Source: Vitrella brassicaformis CCMP3155
Taxonomy: Eukaryota; Protista; Chromerida
Reading direction: 5' to 3'
NCBI GenBank assembly: GCA_001179505.1
Contig: CDMY01000441.1
Coordinates: 1-64,000 of the forward strand
DNA length: 64,000 nt
Part shown: positions 41,268 to 49,384 of the stretch, piece after piece
How the letters are laid out: the number at the start of each line of letters is the position of its first letter
Numbering within the stretch: position 1 is the first letter of the stretch
Notes under the pieces: generated by a model
Told to the model about the DNA's origin: nothing
The model's database searches: none
What the model saw: the letters and a program-made list of their open reading frames with translations, nothing else
Made by a program: the position numbers and the translations under genes

Positions 41268-44200
41268 TCACGAAATGTGCTGCTCATAGTAACTATCACC
41301 ATCTGTCCGCACAGACACCGTCAAATAACCCGCATCCCTCAACCCCCCCAACAGACCATCCATATAGACCCACCCGCACCTCACAAACACGGCTGGCTGC
41401 CCTATTGGCGCAGGAATGTCTGCCTGCCACCCACCGGCACTGTACACCCGTCCGCTCCACAGATGCACCCATCCGTCGGGCTGACTCTTGCAGCCCCGTG
41501 TGTCTGGGTGGAATGAGGACGCTTCTTCTTGTCGACGTCGCAGGGATGGGGTGGAGGTTGGCTGACCGGTGGCGGGTTGTTGCAGGGGGATGGGCGAAGG
41601 CCATGGAGGGGGAAAATACGCCTGAACATGAACCCAGATGGACAGAACCTCTGTGTGTGTGGGGGGGCTCACCGTGACGGTCTTGGCTCCCTGCGTCAGC
41701 ACAGGCACCACGAGCAGGTCCTCGCCGACCAGGCATTGACCCAGCAGCTCACTCCACCCGGGCAATGACAAGGTCTCCTCATTCAGCGGCATATGGAACA
41801 GTGTGTGTCGGACGAGGGGCAGGCCATATGCGTGTGCCTGCCGCATGAGGGCCTGCTTGTACGGCGCCAGCAGGCGGTGTACGGTGGCGAACTTCTTGAG
41901 GTGCTCCAACGACTCGCCGTCGGTCCACACCTGCCAGGCGTCCTCGGGACGATTCCCCTGTCCTCCACCCATCCATCCATTCGCACCGACCGCACAGACA
42001 GAGAGAGAGAGAGGTGCCGCTGCGCTGACCGACCTGTGTGTCTGCTCTGCGTGTGTCCCTCCACCCACCCCACCTGATGTGTACGCAGTACGGCGTCGGT
42101 GAAGGCGTTCATCTCCATCCAGCGCAGCAGCAGCTCCTTGGACCGCACATACACATCCCCGCCACCGCCACCATTGGGACTGGGTGCGTCGAGCATGGTG
42201 TAGCCGCCCACATCGCTGTGCGTGAGGCTCCACCCACTCAGCCCCGCCGTCAGATGGCCGATCAGCGCGCTCCGAATGCCGTCGTGCTCATCCCAGCTCG
42301 TCAGCTGGTCGCCCAGCCAAAACAGAGGCGTGTACCTCGGCCCCTGCACGCCCCCCGCCCGCATGAAGAATATCACCTCCTCCCCGGTCTCTCTCCCATC
42401 ATCCGACAAAGCATAAGGCGTCTCCTGCAGAGCCTCGTGGTTGACGGACGCCCATAGCTGCGGGAAGGCGTTGTGGATGTCTCTGCCTCTGCCGCTTGCG
42501 AGGGCAGCGTCGAAGGGCAGGTACTCCGAGAAGTCGGCCATCCATCCCGCAACGGGGACGGGCCGGCCGGTCTCGGAGCGGCATGTGCTGTTGACTGTGT
42601 CATCGGAGGGGCAGAACTCGGGCAGATGCAGCATGTGGCAGCGGATCAGCTGCATTGCAGGACATCCATCGCGACATACGCATACCATAGCGATCGGCAC
42701 ACATGATTGAGTTTATTGAGGCAGACAGACATGTTTCGCTGGCTTTGCTTGCTTACATCAACGAAGAAGTGCCGTCCTGTCTGGTTGGTCAGATCGACAG
42801 TCCCAAATCTGAAGGCAGGGTCCACCGAGTACTGCACATACGGCAGCCCCGACTCGTTCATCACCAGCACACCCGCACCAGCCGCCTCGGCAAACAGGTC
42901 CCGCCGGCCCTTCATTCTCGGATCGTCCCCCACCCCTGTCGACAGATAGGGGTTGCTGTAGGTCCACACCCGCACCTTCTTGTCCATGAGGCGCTTCAGC
43001 ATGCACTCCCAACCGGGGTAGTGGTGCCGGTCGACGTCCCACGACCACCACAGTCGGATGCCGAAGTCAGTCTCGCGGACGCCCGTCCAGTCCTGCAGCC
43101 ACAGGCCGACAAGCGGCACGCCCCGCTCCAGCAGGAAGTCGGCCATCTCCTCTGCTCGTTGGGTGCCGCCCCAGTAGCCCACGATCACGCCGGCAGAGAT
43201 CCAGGAGGGCAATACCCGCTGGCGGCCTGTGAAGTGCGTGGCCGTGTGCACCAGAGAGGCCAGAGTGGCCGTATGCGAATCGCCATCGTCGCGGAGGGGC
43301 GTGTGGGTGAATGTGAAGAGCTCCAGCGACAGGAGCGTGCACGGACCCCCGTCTGCCGCCGTACACTCGAAAGTCTCCTCAAGAGTCTCCGATACCTCTA
43401 TTGTCGTCTCATTCGGCTCGGTGAAGTCCAGCACACAATAAGCAGAAGAGTTGAGAAAGAGTCCATTGGCCGCCGAGGTGAGGAAAAGGGGCGTGGCCGT
43501 GTAGGTGGTGAATGACGTGCCGGCGGCATGAGGGCTGGTGCGTTCCAGCAGCGTCGTCAGCGGCTGCATCCCACGACCCACCCCCTGCTCCGACGAGAGA
43601 ATGGGCACCCGATGGCCCTTGAGGTCGAAATGGGTGAACTGTGTCCCGGCGCCGAAGACGTGCTCGTCTGCGTCACTCGCCAAGTTGAGGGTCAGCTTGG
43701 CTGCCGTCGGTTTACCTCGTATCGCTATCCACGAAAGACCGCTTTGGTTCCACCGCAGATGGTCGCTGGCGTTTGTCGGAGAGAGCTGAATCTGCCACCG
43801 CACGATGGGCCACTTGTTGTGGTCCTTCTCGCTGCTGCCTCTCACTGCCGCATCAGATATGGACGATAACACCACCCGGAAGCTGACGCACTCCCAGCCA
43901 CGGAGCCGCTGACATGATGACGACCTCTCCTCGCTAACACACAGATCACCCGCGAGAACAGCCGAATCATCCCGACCTCCTCGGTCCAAAGTGACGTTGC
44001 GCGGGATCTCAAAGGGGCAGAACGGGTCGGCATGGCCCTCATCGAAGCGCTCGTAGAAGTTGCCAGATGACTCCTCCATCACAGACGGATCTGCTGACAC
44101 GTCAAACAGGAACCGATCTGGCGGCGTCCTGACCACCACGTGAGGCGCCGCATCTTCTGTGGCGGTGGCAGTGGTGATGTTGAAGCCGCCTGTGGGCGTC

Positions 44201-44280
44201 CACTGCACGTCGAAGCCGAGGATAGAGACGGAGAGGGCTGAAGTGGCGGTAGCAACCAGGACAAAGAAGATCTTACCCAT
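41268..44280 (-). CDS. yihQ: GH31 sulfoquinovosidase (YihQ-like) with signal peptide (4 exons)
   Basis: WLQDWTGVRETDFGIRLWW, GWMADF (nucleophile), WLGDQ (acid/base), HSDVGGYT and RSKELLLRW...FT...RTHQ match the YihQ family. N-terminus is MGKIFFVLVATATSALS, and there are many N-glycosylation sequons. Confidence 0.88.
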
Positions 44281-44403: not shown

Positions 44404-47400
44404 ATGAAGCTCTCTCCGAAGGAGATCGACAACCTCCTTGTGCACAATGTGGGCTTCCTGGCGCAGAAACGGTATAGATCTCTCTCTTAAAGAATCTGCT
44501 CACTCATGGCATGGTGCGTGTCGTTGGTATGAGTCATTCACGGTTCAGGCTTGCCCGCGGCATTCGGCTCAACAGCACTGAGGCGACGGCCCTCATCGCC
44601 GCACAAGTGCTGGAGTTCGTTCGCGAAGGTGAGTGCGCCAAGGGGAGGGCTACGGTGTGGTGGGCCGACACAGTGTCACGCTGCACTGCCCTGTCTGGAT
44701 GTCTGTGTAAGCAGGTTACAGGGTGTCCGAGCTGATGCAGAAGGGCCGTGAGCTGCTGGGCTTCAACCAGGTGCTGCCCGGCGTGGCGGCACTGCTCCAC
44801 GACGTGCAGGTGGAGGGCACCTTCCCTGACGGCACCAAACTCGTCACGGTACGCTCGCTGACCGGGACAGACAGACAGACAGACAGACTGACTGATCTAT
44901 CTATCTATTGTGTCTGTCATGCTGTGTGATGGGGGGGGCAGGTGCATGACCCGATATGCCGCGAGGATGGCGACCTCAGCTTGGCGCTTCACGGGTCGTT
45001 CCTGCCTGTGCCGGACGTGGCCATCTTTGTGGCTGCTAAGTATCCTGGTGCGTGGGCCTTGGCAGGGGCACACACACGCACATAAATAAAGACTGAAAAT
45101 ACGACGGAGAGTGCCCGTGTCTGTGTCTGTGTCTGTGTGCGTCGATGCCTGCCTGCAGGGGACAAGTATCACACCGCCGAAAGCTCTCCGACACCAGGTA
45201 GGTCGCCAGGTTGGCTGGTGGAGCCGGTCATCCATCGTGTGGATTCTCGTTATGTCTGTGGTTGCTCCCTCCCATCCCACCACCACTAGGCGAGTTGGTG
45301 CCTGCGTCAGGGGAGCTGGTGCTGAATGAGGGCCGCAAGACCGTCACTCTCACTGTCACATCGACCTGCGACAGGCCCATCCAGGTAAGGCATGCACAGA
45401 AGGATAGATCTTCGTTCCCAAAGGTCGTCTGTTGCTTGCTTGCTTCACTCAGGTCGGCAGCCACTATCACTTCATTGAGACGAACCCGTACCTCCGATTC
45501 GACCGGGCCAAGGTCAGGTGCCTTACTCTTGCCAAAGAGACTGCATGCGATGCGTGTGCTTCTTCGTGATTTGCAGGCGCTGGGGATGCGGCTGAACATC
45601 GCCGCGGGCACAGCTGTGCGCTTCGAACCAGGTGGATACCACACCAAGCTATGTGAAATGGTCGGTAGACGCCACGCAGGGTGTCATTCATTCGCACAGG
45701 CCAGACGCGTCAGGTGCATCTGGTGGAGATCGCCGGCAACAAGAAGGTCTACGGAGGTGCCTCCCTCACTCACCGACCGCCACCCAGACTAACACACCCT
45801 CACCGTCTGTCTGCATGGGGCCGTCCGTCCGTCTGCAGGGAACGGTCTGGTGGACGGCGTGGCCGACCCATCCAAGATCCCGGCAGTCCTCGCCAAGCTG
45901 CAGCAGCAGGGCTTCCTGCACCAGGAGGAGCCTGGCGCGCAGCCTGCCCCCGTGGCGACCATCCCAAGATCCATCTACGCACACACATACGGGTGGGTAC
46001 CCTACCCTGGCAGCTCTTTTCTCTTGTCGCGTCGCGTCATCCATGTGTGAGCGTGAGTGACATTGCAGGCCGACAGTGGGCGACAGGTTGCGTCTCGGCG
46101 ACACGGCTCTCGTGGTTCAGGTGGAGAAGGACTTCACCGTCTATGGCGACGAGTGCAAGTTCGGCGGTGGGAAGGTGCTCCGTGAGGGTATGGGTCAGAT
46201 GGCCAACTGCTCACCCGCCAAGGCCCTCGACTGCGTCATCACCAACGCACTCATTATCGACGCCAAACTCGGTATCGTCAAGGTATGCTATGCTGGCCGC
46301 CAGCGGTGCACGCAGTGATTGATGCCTCCATCGTGTCTGTTGTGTATGTGTATGTTATGTGTGCAGGCTGACGTTGGTCTCAAGGGCGGCATGATCGTTG
46401 GCATTGGGAAGGCCGGCAATCCCGACGTCATGCAGGCGAGCCGAGCCACACGCTCACGACGGACAGACAGACATCTGGTGGATGGATGCAGTGCAGGGTC
46501 CGTAATATATCTGTCTGTGTGTGTGTGTGCGTGTGTGTGTGTGTGTGTGTGTCTGTGCAGGGTGTGGACGGTTCCATGTGGGTGGGTGCGACGACCGAGG
46601 CCATAGCCGGTGAGGGCTTGATCCTCACCGCCGGCGCCCTCGACGTCCACGTCCACTTCATATGCCCACAGCTCTACCAAGAGGCCATCGCATCAGGCAA
46701 GGCACGCACCCGTCAAGCAGAACACACCACACCACCGCAATCAATCCCATATTTGCAAGCTTCTGAGTGCTGTGCAGGCATCACGACGCTGCTTGGTGGC
46801 GGCACCGGGCCTGCCACTGGCACCAACGCGACGACCTGCACGGCTGGGCCCAAAAACATCAAAGACATGATTCTCGCCACAGGCATGGCATGCCTGTGGC
46901 GCACAAGAGAACGAACGGCCCATGGAAAGGGCACAGCACACGTGAGGCGTGTGTATGTGTGCAGATGAGTTCCCAATGAACTTCGCCTTCACTGGCAAGG
47001 GCAACACATCGCTGGTGAGTGACAGGAAGGAAGTAAGGGGCAGACCTCTGCTGTTGTGGTGTGTGGGACGATCAGTCTGGCGACGAGATCGCCATCGACC
47101 TGAAGGAGCAGATCGTTGGCGGCGCCGTGGGCCTCAAGCTTCACGAAGACTGGGGAACCACACCTGCTGCGATCGACACGTAACCAGCCACCCATCCCCG
47201 CCATTGACACACACCTCTCTCTCTCCCTCTCTCCCCATCTCTCCCTCCCTCCCTCTCTCTCTCTCTTTCTCTCCATCTCTCTCTGTGCAGGTGTCTGCGT
47301 GCCGCCGAGGCGTATGACGTGCAGGTGACGATCCACACCGACACCCTCAACGAGTCTGGCTGCGTGGAGCACTCGATCGCCGCCTTCAAGGGCAGGAGCA

Positions 47401-48964
47401 TCCACACCTACCACTCTGAGGGAGCGGGGGGCGGCCACGCGCCCGACATCATGCGGGTGTGCGGGGAGCCCAACGTGCTGCCGTCTTCGACCAACCCCAC
47501 GCGGCCCTACACCGTCAACACCATCGACGAGCATGTCGACATGCTGTGTGTGTGCCACCATCTGGACAAGGCAAGCCAAGGAAAGGCATTAGATAGAGGC
47601 GATAGATATTGTGGGCGATATCGTGTGTGTGTGTGTGTGTGTGTGCAGAATCTTAAGGAGGATCTGGCCTTTGCTGAGTCGCGCATTCGGGCTGAGACCA
47701 TCCAGGTACACACCCAGAGAGAGAGAGACGTGCAGTATCCCTGCATGAGTGTTTGTGCGCACTCACGTCAGGCTGAGGACATCCTCCACGACCTCGGCGC
47801 CATCTCCACCATGTCGTCAGACTCACAGGCCATGGTCAGCCGCCCAGACACCCACTGGCTAAGTCATGGTGTGACCTCGCCGCTGCCTGCACACAGGGTC
47901 GCATCGGCGAGGTCATCTGCCGCACGTGGCAGACGGCCGACAAGATGAAGAAGCAGAGGGGCCACCTGCCCGAAGACAAAGACACTGGCGCTGACAACTA
48001 CAGGGTGGGCGGGCTGGACACGCCACACAGGCACATCACATCCATCGATGGCACTTGTCAGTCTCTGTGTGTGTGTGTTGTCAGGTGCGTCGTTATATCG
48101 CCAAGTACACGGTCAACCCCGCCATCACACACGGCATGAGCCACGTCATCGGATCTGTCGAGGTGGGTGGGCGGGAGCAGAGAGACAGACAGACAGACAG
48201 GCAGACAGACGCACAGAGACCATATCAATGGCCGCTGCTGCAATGACTTGCCTTTGTGTGTGGTGTGTCAGGTTGGTAAGCTGGCTGATTTGTGTCTGTG
48301 GAAGCCGGGCTACTTCGGCACCAAGCCCGAGATCATCATCAAGGGCGGACAAATCGCATGGGCACAAATGGGTGAGCGGTGGACCGATGGTGGACGGGAT
48401 CCTCTGTGTGTGTGTGTGCGTGTGTGTGTGTGTTGTGTGCAGGCATGCCCAACGCGTCGATCCCCACCCCGCAGCCCGTCATGCAGCGCGAAATGTTCGG
48501 CTCCTTCGGAAAGGTCAGCACATAGAGACACACATACACACGTGACCGGCCAGGCCACATTCAGCACCACCACGGCACGGCCGTGTCTGCGTGTCCATCA
48601 TTCAGGCGGTTGGCTCCAATTCGCTGGTGTTCGTGTCCAAGGCGTGTGTTGACTCGGGCGTGACCAAGACATGGGGGATTTCAAAGCGTGTGGAGGCGGT
48701 CAAGGACATCCGCCGTGTGAAGAAGGCCGACATGGTGCTCAACGCCCACTGCCCCAAGATACACATCGACCCGGAACGGTTCCACGTCACAGTCACCGAC
48801 GACAAGGTGTGTCAGCCACCGACACACACAAAGAGGGGGCGGTCGAGGGATAAAGTAAGTGTGTGTGTTTGTGTGTGTGTGTGTGCTGACAGGGTGGCTC
48901 TGAGCTGCTGCAGTGTGAGCCAGCGTCCGTCCTCCCGCTGGCGCAGAGGTACTTCCTCTTCTGA
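44404..48964 (+). CDS. URE: Urease, eukaryotic single-chain gamma-beta-alpha fusion (25 exons)
   Basis: [11 protein letters not shown]..., [13 protein letters not shown] and DRPIQ|VGSHYHF. Ni-site motifs are present: [43 protein letters not shown] and SSDSQAM|GR. Ends [10 protein letters not shown]. Confidence 0.97.
46516..46552 (+). repeat. (GT)n microsatellite immediately upstream of a 3' splice site (representative of many introns)
   Basis: A gtgtgt run ends a few nt before the ctgtgcag acceptor at 46560. The same arrangement occurs at 6025-6059, 47625-47648 and 48400-48441. Confidence 0.9.
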
Positions 48965-49384
48965 TCTGTGGAAAGGTTGGTGCGTGGTGCGTGGTGCGTG
49001 CTGTGTGCAACTGTGTGCATGGCAGACATGGAGGAGCATATGTGCGCTCTCTGCGTTCTTCGACACCTCTCTCTATGTTTGGGCAGTTTTTTCCCCCAAA
49101 CAAACAGGCAGACTGCTTTATCCACGAACCAGCCGCAAACGGCATCTTTCACATAGGGTCCATGGCGTGTCTTTCAAATGATAGGTCCATCCATGCAGCT
49201 GCACACATCAGAGTGCTCACAAACGTACACATGTTAGTGGGTGTGGGTGTGGGTGTGGGGACGGGGCTGCACATGGTGCGGACAGCATCACACACCCATG
49301 GTCAGTCATCCCTTGCGTCACTCGAACTCTCCCTCCCCTAATTCTGCACGTAAGTCTGTCTACTCGGCGTATCAATGGCGCTGT

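Follow-up and report, generated by a model that had tools for sequence, protein, structure and literature searches.

In a window of 64,000 nucleotides from the chromerid alga Vitrella brassicaformis CCMP3155 (contig CDMY01000441.1, positions 1 to 64,000, the whole stretch of DNA that was analysed), a four-exon gene on the minus strand (44280..41268) encodes a protein of glycoside hydrolase family GH31. We read this protein, with a probability of about 0.65, as a retaining alpha-glycosidase like YihQ and SmoI, that is, a GH31 sulfoquinovosidase, which would enter the endoplasmic reticulum (ER) and free sulfoquinovose from sulfolipid. The features that we observed directly, namely the gene structure, the family, the residues, the fold, the leader, the sequon excess and an orthologue in Chromera velia, are the starting point of this reading. 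The protein is already public as CEM13014.1, or UniProt A0A0G4FIS8 (912 amino acids), which the exhaustive protein search matched to the exon 1 translation with 100% identity over residues 1–508, and its database entries carry no more specific names than “unnamed protein product” and “GH31 N-terminal domain-containing protein”. An initial annotation, made from the letters of this DNA alone, had proposed a secreted or lumenal algal sulfoquinovosidase possibly acquired from bacteria; the YihQ-type enzyme of a eukaryotic alga, with its full sulfonate triad and its probable secretory character, withstood our analysis, and the bacterial acquisition, as a recent event, did not.

Family, predicted fold and the proposed sulfonate-binding pocket

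All four exons match the NCBIfam YihQ model PRK10426 (E 9e-72, 2e-53, 2e-19 and 5e-7 for exons 1 to 4, respectively), and the Pfam GH31 domains PF13802, PF01055 and PF21365 also lie on them. In the sequence search of the PDB, the strong matches were exclusively characterised sulfoquinovosidases (E. coli YihQ, A. tumefaciens SmoI, the E. rectale enzyme and BmSQase, with E 1e-28 to 1e-38), no other GH31 enzyme scoring better than 1e-4, and exon 2 taken alone behaved in the same way (1e-28 to 1e-30 for the sulfoquinovosidases vs. 1e-4 or weaker for the other GH31 enzymes). An AlphaFold2 model of A0A0G4FIS8, made with a 51-sequence alignment, reached a mean predicted local distance difference test score (pLDDT) of 82.9 and a predicted template modelling score (pTM) of 0.88. 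Its 23 best Foldseek matches in the PDB are all sulfoquinovosidases, with template modelling (TM) scores by target of 0.88–0.93, the first different enzyme, of the YicI xylosidase/glucosidase type, follows at TM 0.64, and all of the 50 PDB matches listed are GH31-type enzymes. The initial annotation had also proposed a GH31 phylogeny as a check, and in trees rooted on YicI the Vitrella protein lies within the YihQ-containing group. Judged by the PDB sequence search, the Foldseek gap and the trees, that is, by comparison of sequences and of a predicted model, the protein is closer to the characterised sulfoquinovosidases, which CAZy places in GH31_13, than to other GH31 subfamilies.

The residue equivalences were taken from a pairwise alignment with E. 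coli YihQ (from NC_000913; 36.6% identity over 664 aligned positions), in which the Vitrella protein has the YihQ residue at seven of the eight functional positions, the exception being Q262, replaced by Trp370. The sulfonate triad R301/W304/Y508 is present as R409, W412 and Y658 in a gap-free local alignment, and the region of the sulfonate motif also aligns without gaps to the solved sulfoquinovosidase structures in HMMER. For hydroxyl recognition, carried by Q288 (or by E270 paired with K245) together with H537, the Vitrella protein has Q396 and H699, and the catalytic D547 and D622 are invariant across the 51-sequence alignment. The initial annotation had placed the Gln at 43095, the Arg and Trp at +13 and +16 from it, the Tyr at 42200 and the two catalytic Asp at 42533 and 42308, all of which proved correct, and its match with the Q288/R301/W304/Y508 set and spacing is confirmed by the YihQ alignment. 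Trp370, at the Q262 position, had been overlooked there.

With the solved bacterial GH31 sulfoquinovosidases (YihQ, SmoI/AtSQase, the E. rectale enzyme and BmSQase), the Vitrella protein thus shares the same four-domain fold, the nucleophile, the acid/base, the R/W/Y triad and the equivalents of Q288 and H537. In contrast to them, it alone has an export leader, nine N-x-S/T sequons, 13 Cys, several inserts (residues 118–155, 307–338, 512–540 and 799–842) and a Trp in place of Q262/K245, besides having its gene outside any operon and without recognisable sulfoglycolysis partners; also, YihQ is cytoplasmic, unlike the predicted exported Vitrella protein.

In the mechanism that we propose, the anomeric carbon of sulfoquinovosyl glycerol (SQGro) or sulfoquinovosyl diacylglycerol (SQDG) would be the target of Asp547, with Asp622 working as the acid/base, the 6-sulfonate being held by Arg409, Trp412 and Tyr658 and the sugar hydroxyls by Gln396 and His699. 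An endogenous substrate exists, given that chromerids are reported to make SQDG (PMC4501334). The sulfoquinovose would be released either from the alga’s own sulfolipid, delivered by membrane turnover, or from external sulfolipid, and we infer the substrate, the compartment and the physiological role, vacuolar turnover or scavenging, from the features described here.

Relatives and ancestry of the gene

Among the top matches of the exhaustive protein search were Mesostigma viride, Cymbomonas tetramitiformis and Monosiga brevicollis, with 43–46% identity, and further relatives were found in Anaeramoeba flamelloides (annotated as “sulfoquinovosidase”), Amorphochlora amoebiformis and Aureococcus anophagefferens, besides several transcripts from MMETSP and EukProt and another copy in Cymbomonas; the MMETSP taxon id 87120, which resolves to a fungus, was disregarded as unreliable. 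The best non-self match in the full-length search was a protein of Chromera velia (P0240, 1326 amino acids), with 521 bits vs. 458 for the next one; the two orthologues have 41% overall identity, and the equivalents of R409, W412, Y658 and Q396 are kept in both. The Chromera protein is 414 residues longer than that of Vitrella because of large insertions, one of them hydrophobic and placed right after HSDIGGYTM, and these insertions may be unspliced introns in the public model.

The Vitrella protein was placed in three trees. It falls in a 24-row clade with support 96 in FastTree (150 rows), in a 31-row clade with support 97 in IQ-TREE under LG+C20 with posterior mean site frequencies (PMSF; 68 rows), and, in IQ-TREE under LG+G4 (47 rows), it is the sister of Chromera with a support of 99 in the Shimodaira–Hasegawa-like approximate likelihood ratio test (SH-aLRT), both within a 17-row clade (90). 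Every source-named member of the Vitrella clade is eukaryotic in all three trees, and all members aligned at the column of the motif carry xQRW, except one with EQLW. Since Chromera is the sister at 41% identity, the gene was present in the chromerid ancestor, and we consider it settled that it is older than the Vitrella/Chromera split and not a recent bacterial import.

The suggestion of the initial annotation that the few introns hint at acquisition from bacteria has therefore to be set against the Chromera sister gene and the clade whose named members are only eukaryotes, and a recent event is unsupported. A recent bacterial transfer into Vitrella, or contamination of the assembly, would fit the presence of only three introns beside a urease gene with many, the mainly bacterial composition of the GH31 sulfoquinovosidase group as a whole, and the approximately unbiased (AU) test, in which forcing the chromerids with the Anaerolineales/Rubrobacter/land-plant clade lowered the log-likelihood by 46.8 without this grouping being rejected (p = 0.149). 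We nevertheless hold this explanation to be highly improbable, given that the sister position of Chromera rules out a recent event, and that introns 1 and 2, which are spliceosomal, change the frame and are needed to restore the homology, so the gene is truly eukaryotic. In addition, its GC content is like that of the surroundings, the urease gene lies head-to-head with it only 123 bp away, and both chromerids group with Mesostigma, Cymbomonas, Monosiga, Anaeramoeba, Amorphochlora, Aureococcus and the MMETSP transcripts (SH-aLRT 97 with the mixture model). That the gene has few introns does not speak for a recent bacterial import. Because the AU test does not reject the bacterial/plant grouping, we make no claim on the deep origin of the gene, which could still be an ancient bacterial one.

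The land-plant proteins named “sulfoquinovosidase-like” or “alpha-glucosidase yihQ” (about 870 amino acids) belong to the same GH31 lineage, with 35–37% identity, and also come from eukaryotic phototrophs, but, unlike the chromerid genes, they nest in the bacterial Anaerolineales/Rubrobacter clade (P0325, P0333, P0342 and P0345; 99 SH-aLRT), and they carry Gln in place of R301 (QQQW instead of QQRW). Their nesting and their Gln lead us to take them as a separate acquisition with a changed pocket, apparently distinct in origin from the algal and protist clade, and the annotation of these QQQW proteins as sulfoquinovosidases may be doubtful. The same Gln occurs across a large bacterial clade that includes Rubrobacter, Promineifilaceae and Anaerolineales (P0006, P0241 and P0267).

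Eukaryotic GH31 sulfoquinovosidase homologues have been credited to Speciale 2016 in the citations given by PMC13436972 and bioRxiv 10.64898/2026.02.11.705467, and algal YihQ homologues to Scholz 2021 in the citation given by PMC12780224, which also cites earlier work that detected YihQ homologues in few species of algae. According to reviews, GH31 and GH188 sulfoquinovosidase orthologues are found across diverse eukaryotic algae, and phototrophs may reuse the SQDG that they make (PMC13436972); a 2026 preprint described animal sulfoquinovosidase homologues with signal peptides, using the same residue set as we do here (bioRxiv 10.64898/2026.02.11.705467). The novelty seen by the initial annotation, for which sulfoquinovose catabolism was characterised mainly in bacteria, was thus overstated, with algal and other eukaryotic homologues on record since 2016 and signal-peptide-bearing animal ones since 2026. 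These reported eukaryotic homologues share with the Vitrella protein the same clade in our trees and the same xQRW, D/D and Y signature, and most of the full-length members have an N-terminal hydrophobic leader, as SignalP reported for the animal enzymes; the Trp at position 262 is found in the chromerids only. The GH188 NAD+-dependent sulfoquinovosidases (SqgA), validated experimentally in marine algae (PMC12780224, PMC10755693), have the same proposed job in algae, freeing sulfoquinovose from SQGro or SQDG, but their fold is unrelated and their mechanism is oxidoreductive. For the separate GH31 SqgH clade, no homologues with the conserved residues were reported in marine algae (PMC12780224).

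As gene discovery, the gain is small, given that algal, animal and protist homologues are already published or annotated and that the Vitrella protein is already public under a generic name. In the literature that we searched, we found neither a description of a chromerid GH31 sulfoquinovosidase nor an assay of any eukaryotic one, and a 2022 review stated that eukaryotic sulfoquinovose-degrading enzymes were unknown (PMC9594981). With its full triad, its export leader and a conserved variant of the pocket that is specific to its lineage, the chromerid enzyme is well placed to be the first candidate GH31 sulfoquinovosidase of a eukaryote to be tested biochemically, and it could reveal where an algal cell dismantles its sulfolipid.

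Pocket variant, destination and downstream pathway

On the side of the destination, the first confident strands of the AlphaFold2 fold start at about residue 23 (pLDDT 73–87 over residues 11–80), directly after the leader, so that a transit peptide would not fit in between. Acidic residues outnumber basic ones over the 40 positions that follow (5 D/E vs. 2 K/R); in other words, of a bipartite plastid signal, which is a leader followed by an unstructured, non-acidic transit peptide, a signal-like leader is present and no such transit peptide is seen. The protein has 9 N-x-S/T sequons, compared with 2.9 ± 1.5 in 5000 shuffles (P about 0.001), which take up 9 of its 20 Asn residues, and neither a KDEL/HDEL ending nor a hydrophobic tail was found at its C-terminus. 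The roughly nine sequons and the lack of a clear transit peptide noted in the initial annotation are borne out by these data, and so is its signal peptide, in the form of a hydrophobic leader. The secretory pathway, leading to the lytic vacuole, the surface or the medium, is the likely destination according to sequence and model: the protein would enter the ER by its N-terminal signal peptide or anchor, it would probably be N-glycosylated, and, given the ER entry and the lack of a KDEL-type ending, it would act at one of these three places. The leader is not special to Vitrella, since an N-terminal hydrophobic segment is present in 19 of the 31 proteins of its clade and, among 33 relatives of about 750 amino acids that are mostly bacterial, in about 21; a signal-like leader occurs in the Chromera orthologue too.

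Four points weigh against a secretory sulfoquinovosidase. In the aligned sequences, Trp370 stands where YihQ has Q262, the partner of Q288. The leader, judged from its sequence, could be an uncleaved anchor instead of a cleaved peptide, and the Phe right after the predicted cleavage site (SILG followed by F) is also a hallmark of chromerid plastid import, less conserved in Vitrella (PMC6668581). Finally, the searches of the Vitrella genome yielded no sulfoquinovose isomerase, no sulfofructose phosphate (SFP) aldolase and no SmoC-type monooxygenase.

Regarding the first point, Q262 pairs with Q288 in YihQ, and the corresponding pair of the Agrobacterium enzyme is K245/E270 (bioRxiv 10.64898/2026.02.11.705467); where these enzymes have Q262 in QQRW or K245 in KERW, the Vitrella protein has Trp370 in WQRW. 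This Trp was found in Vitrella alone among the 150 aligned sequences, and the Chromera orthologue, added later, shares it. A YihQ-lineage GH31 enzyme shifted to another substrate through a pocket reshaped by Trp370, be it a neutral alpha-glucoside or a sugar with some other modification at position 6, would account for a residue that the two chromerids share and that is otherwise absent from that alignment, and the sulfoquinovosidase pocket does drift, since large parts of the family, the land-plant “sulfoquinovosidase-like” proteins included, have lost R301 (QQQW). We find such a shift unlikely. R409, W412, Y658 and Q396 are kept in both chromerids despite their 41% identity, a sign that the sulfonate triad is under purifying selection, and position 262 is highly variable (E, Q, T, S, Y, M or H) among the relatives that retain the R/W/Y triad, for which reason we take Trp370 as a variant and not as a disqualifier. 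Because both chromerids share WQRW at just 41% overall identity, it is a conserved chromerid feature and not noise, and this conserved WQRW variant, read from the alignments, is the one small new point of this work.

The leader and the Phe could also mean that we are looking at the first half of a bipartite complex-plastid signal, and that the enzyme acts in the plastid directly on thylakoid sulfolipid. The four-membrane plastid of Vitrella is indeed served via the ER, and the sulfolipid substrate is located in the plastid. This is still less likely than a change of substrate, given that the fold beginning at residue 23 leaves no space for a transit peptide, that the residues after the leader are net acidic, and that nearly half of the Asn residues lie in sequons. 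Moreover, F23 is explained as the Phe of the first-strand “GxFxV”, conserved family-wide and found in bacterial relatives too, and the residue after the Chromera leader is Ser, not Phe.

With respect to the downstream pathway, the sulfoglycolysis genes that the initial annotation had proposed to look for did not turn up. The E. coli YihS (sulfoquinovose isomerase) and YihT (SFP aldolase) queries had no match in the Vitrella genome, the PF07221 matches at three places in that genome were nearest to cellobiose 2-epimerase and N-acylglucosamine 2-epimerase instead of YihS, and PF00296, the luciferase-like monooxygenase family of SmoC, had no match in the Vitrella genome, with 9 of 14 control genomes positive. 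This search was limited to genes of the sulfoglycolytic Embden–Meyerhof–Parnas (sulfo-EMP) and sulfoquinovose monooxygenase (SMO) types, the Entner–Doudoroff (ED), transaldolase (TAL), transketolase (TK) and dioxygenase (SDO) routes and GH188 SqgA not having been searched. With no sulfo-EMP or SMO-type partner found, nothing in these searches accounts for the fate of the released sulfoquinovose. At least two Vitrella genes of the acylglucosamine 2-epimerase (AGE) superfamily (G000:C347:173391-174279 and G000:C336:142201-143128) have a best match that is not a sulfoquinovose isomerase.

A wider and more tentative proposal, which we hold to be less likely than not, is that the chromerid WQRW enzyme is part of an ancient secretory clade of true sulfoquinovosidases that extends across the eukaryotes and breaks down, in a lytic compartment, the sulfolipid of the cell’s own thylakoids, for instance when sulfur is short or plastids turn over, with the sulfoquinovose exported to associated bacteria and not catabolised in the alga; the export is a guess, though a reasonable one. 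If true, the eukaryotic step of this breakdown, which has long been sought, would lie in this clade.

On a contig of JGI sample 3300045300 (P0194), which is intron-poor, the sulfoquinovosidase homologue adjoins a gene for an oxidoreductase of the Gfo/Idh/MocA family, with a P450, eIF1 and a poly(A) polymerase among the other neighbours. The source of this contig is taken as eukaryotic because the homologue stands beside poly(A) polymerase and eIF1, and the adjoining oxidoreductase could be a sulfoquinovose-processing partner.

Gene model and neighbourhood

The gene is single-copy in the Vitrella assembly (72.7 Mb, 1064 contigs), and A0A0G4FIS8 equals the joined translation of the four exons in Table 1. 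The three introns, already counted in the initial annotation, are all GT..AG.

Table 1. Coordinates of the putative sulfoquinovosidase gene, its exons and introns, and the codons of its predicted functional residues
Feature	Positions	Strand	Remarks
Signal peptide or signal anchor, residues 1–22	44215..44280	-	MGK plus 18 mostly hydrophobic residues; likely cleavage between SILG and FDVQW; Kyte-Doolittle maximum 2.12 at residue 4
Exon 1, residues 1–508	42757..44280	-	Signal leader, N-terminal beta-sandwich, first half of (beta/alpha)8 barrel with sulfonate motif; Pfam PF13802 and PF01055, NCBIfam PRK10426; YihQ/SmoI best PDB matches
Trp370 codon	43171..43173	-	YihQ Q262 position, by alignments
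Sulfonate/4-OH recognition motif QDWTGVRETDFGIRLWW	43045..43095	-	Q396, R409, W412; PDB matches, YihQ alignment
Q396 codon, CAG	43095-43093	-	YihQ Q288
R409 codon	43056-43054	-	+13 from Q396; YihQ R301
W412 codon	43047-43045	-	+16 from Q396; YihQ W304
Intron 1, 107 nt	42650..42756	-	GTAAGC..CAG, frame-shifting
Exon 2, residues 509–700	42074..42649	-	Cys-rich insert, nucleophile, acid/base, Tyr, His; PF01055 E 2.3e-16, PRK10426 E 2.1e-53
Asp547 codon, predicted catalytic nucleophile	42533..42535	-	GWMADF; YihQ D405
Asp622 codon, predicted general acid/base	42308..42310	-	WLGDQ; YihQ D472
Tyr658 codon, predicted sulfonate contact	42200..42202	-	HSDVGGY; YihQ Y508
His699 codon	42077..42079	-	RTHQGN; YihQ H537
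Intron 2, 116 nt	41958..42073	-	GTGGGG..CAG, frame-shifting
Exon 3, residues 701–795	41673..41957	-	Barrel end and start of C-terminal beta domain
Intron 3 (public model), 51 nt	41622..41672	-	GTGAGC..TTCAG, in frame, no stop; removal yields family-conserved V-x-x-Y-[LF]-P
Exon 4, residues 796–912 and TGA stop (41270-41268)	41268..41621	-	C-terminal beta domain
Pro-rich 44-residue stretch, residues 799–842	41481..41612	-	None in relatives; pLDDT 52–70

The third intron is unusually short beside the other two, and the 3' part of the public gene model may be mis-spliced. A model with a 192-nt intron 3, giving 865 amino acids, was discarded, as it skips the family-conserved “AYFP” that the 51-nt intron restores. 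The Pro-rich stretch that follows may be a disordered loop or unrecognised intron sequence.

Upstream, on the plus strand (44404-49200), lies a multi-exon gene for a fused gamma-beta-alpha urease (Pfam Urease_gamma, Urease_beta, Urease_alpha and Amidohydro_1), and the 123 bp mentioned above separate its ATG (44404) from that of the sulfoquinovosidase gene (44280). A bidirectional promoter common to these two genes of nutrient scavenging, or an overlap of their 5' ends, is possible.

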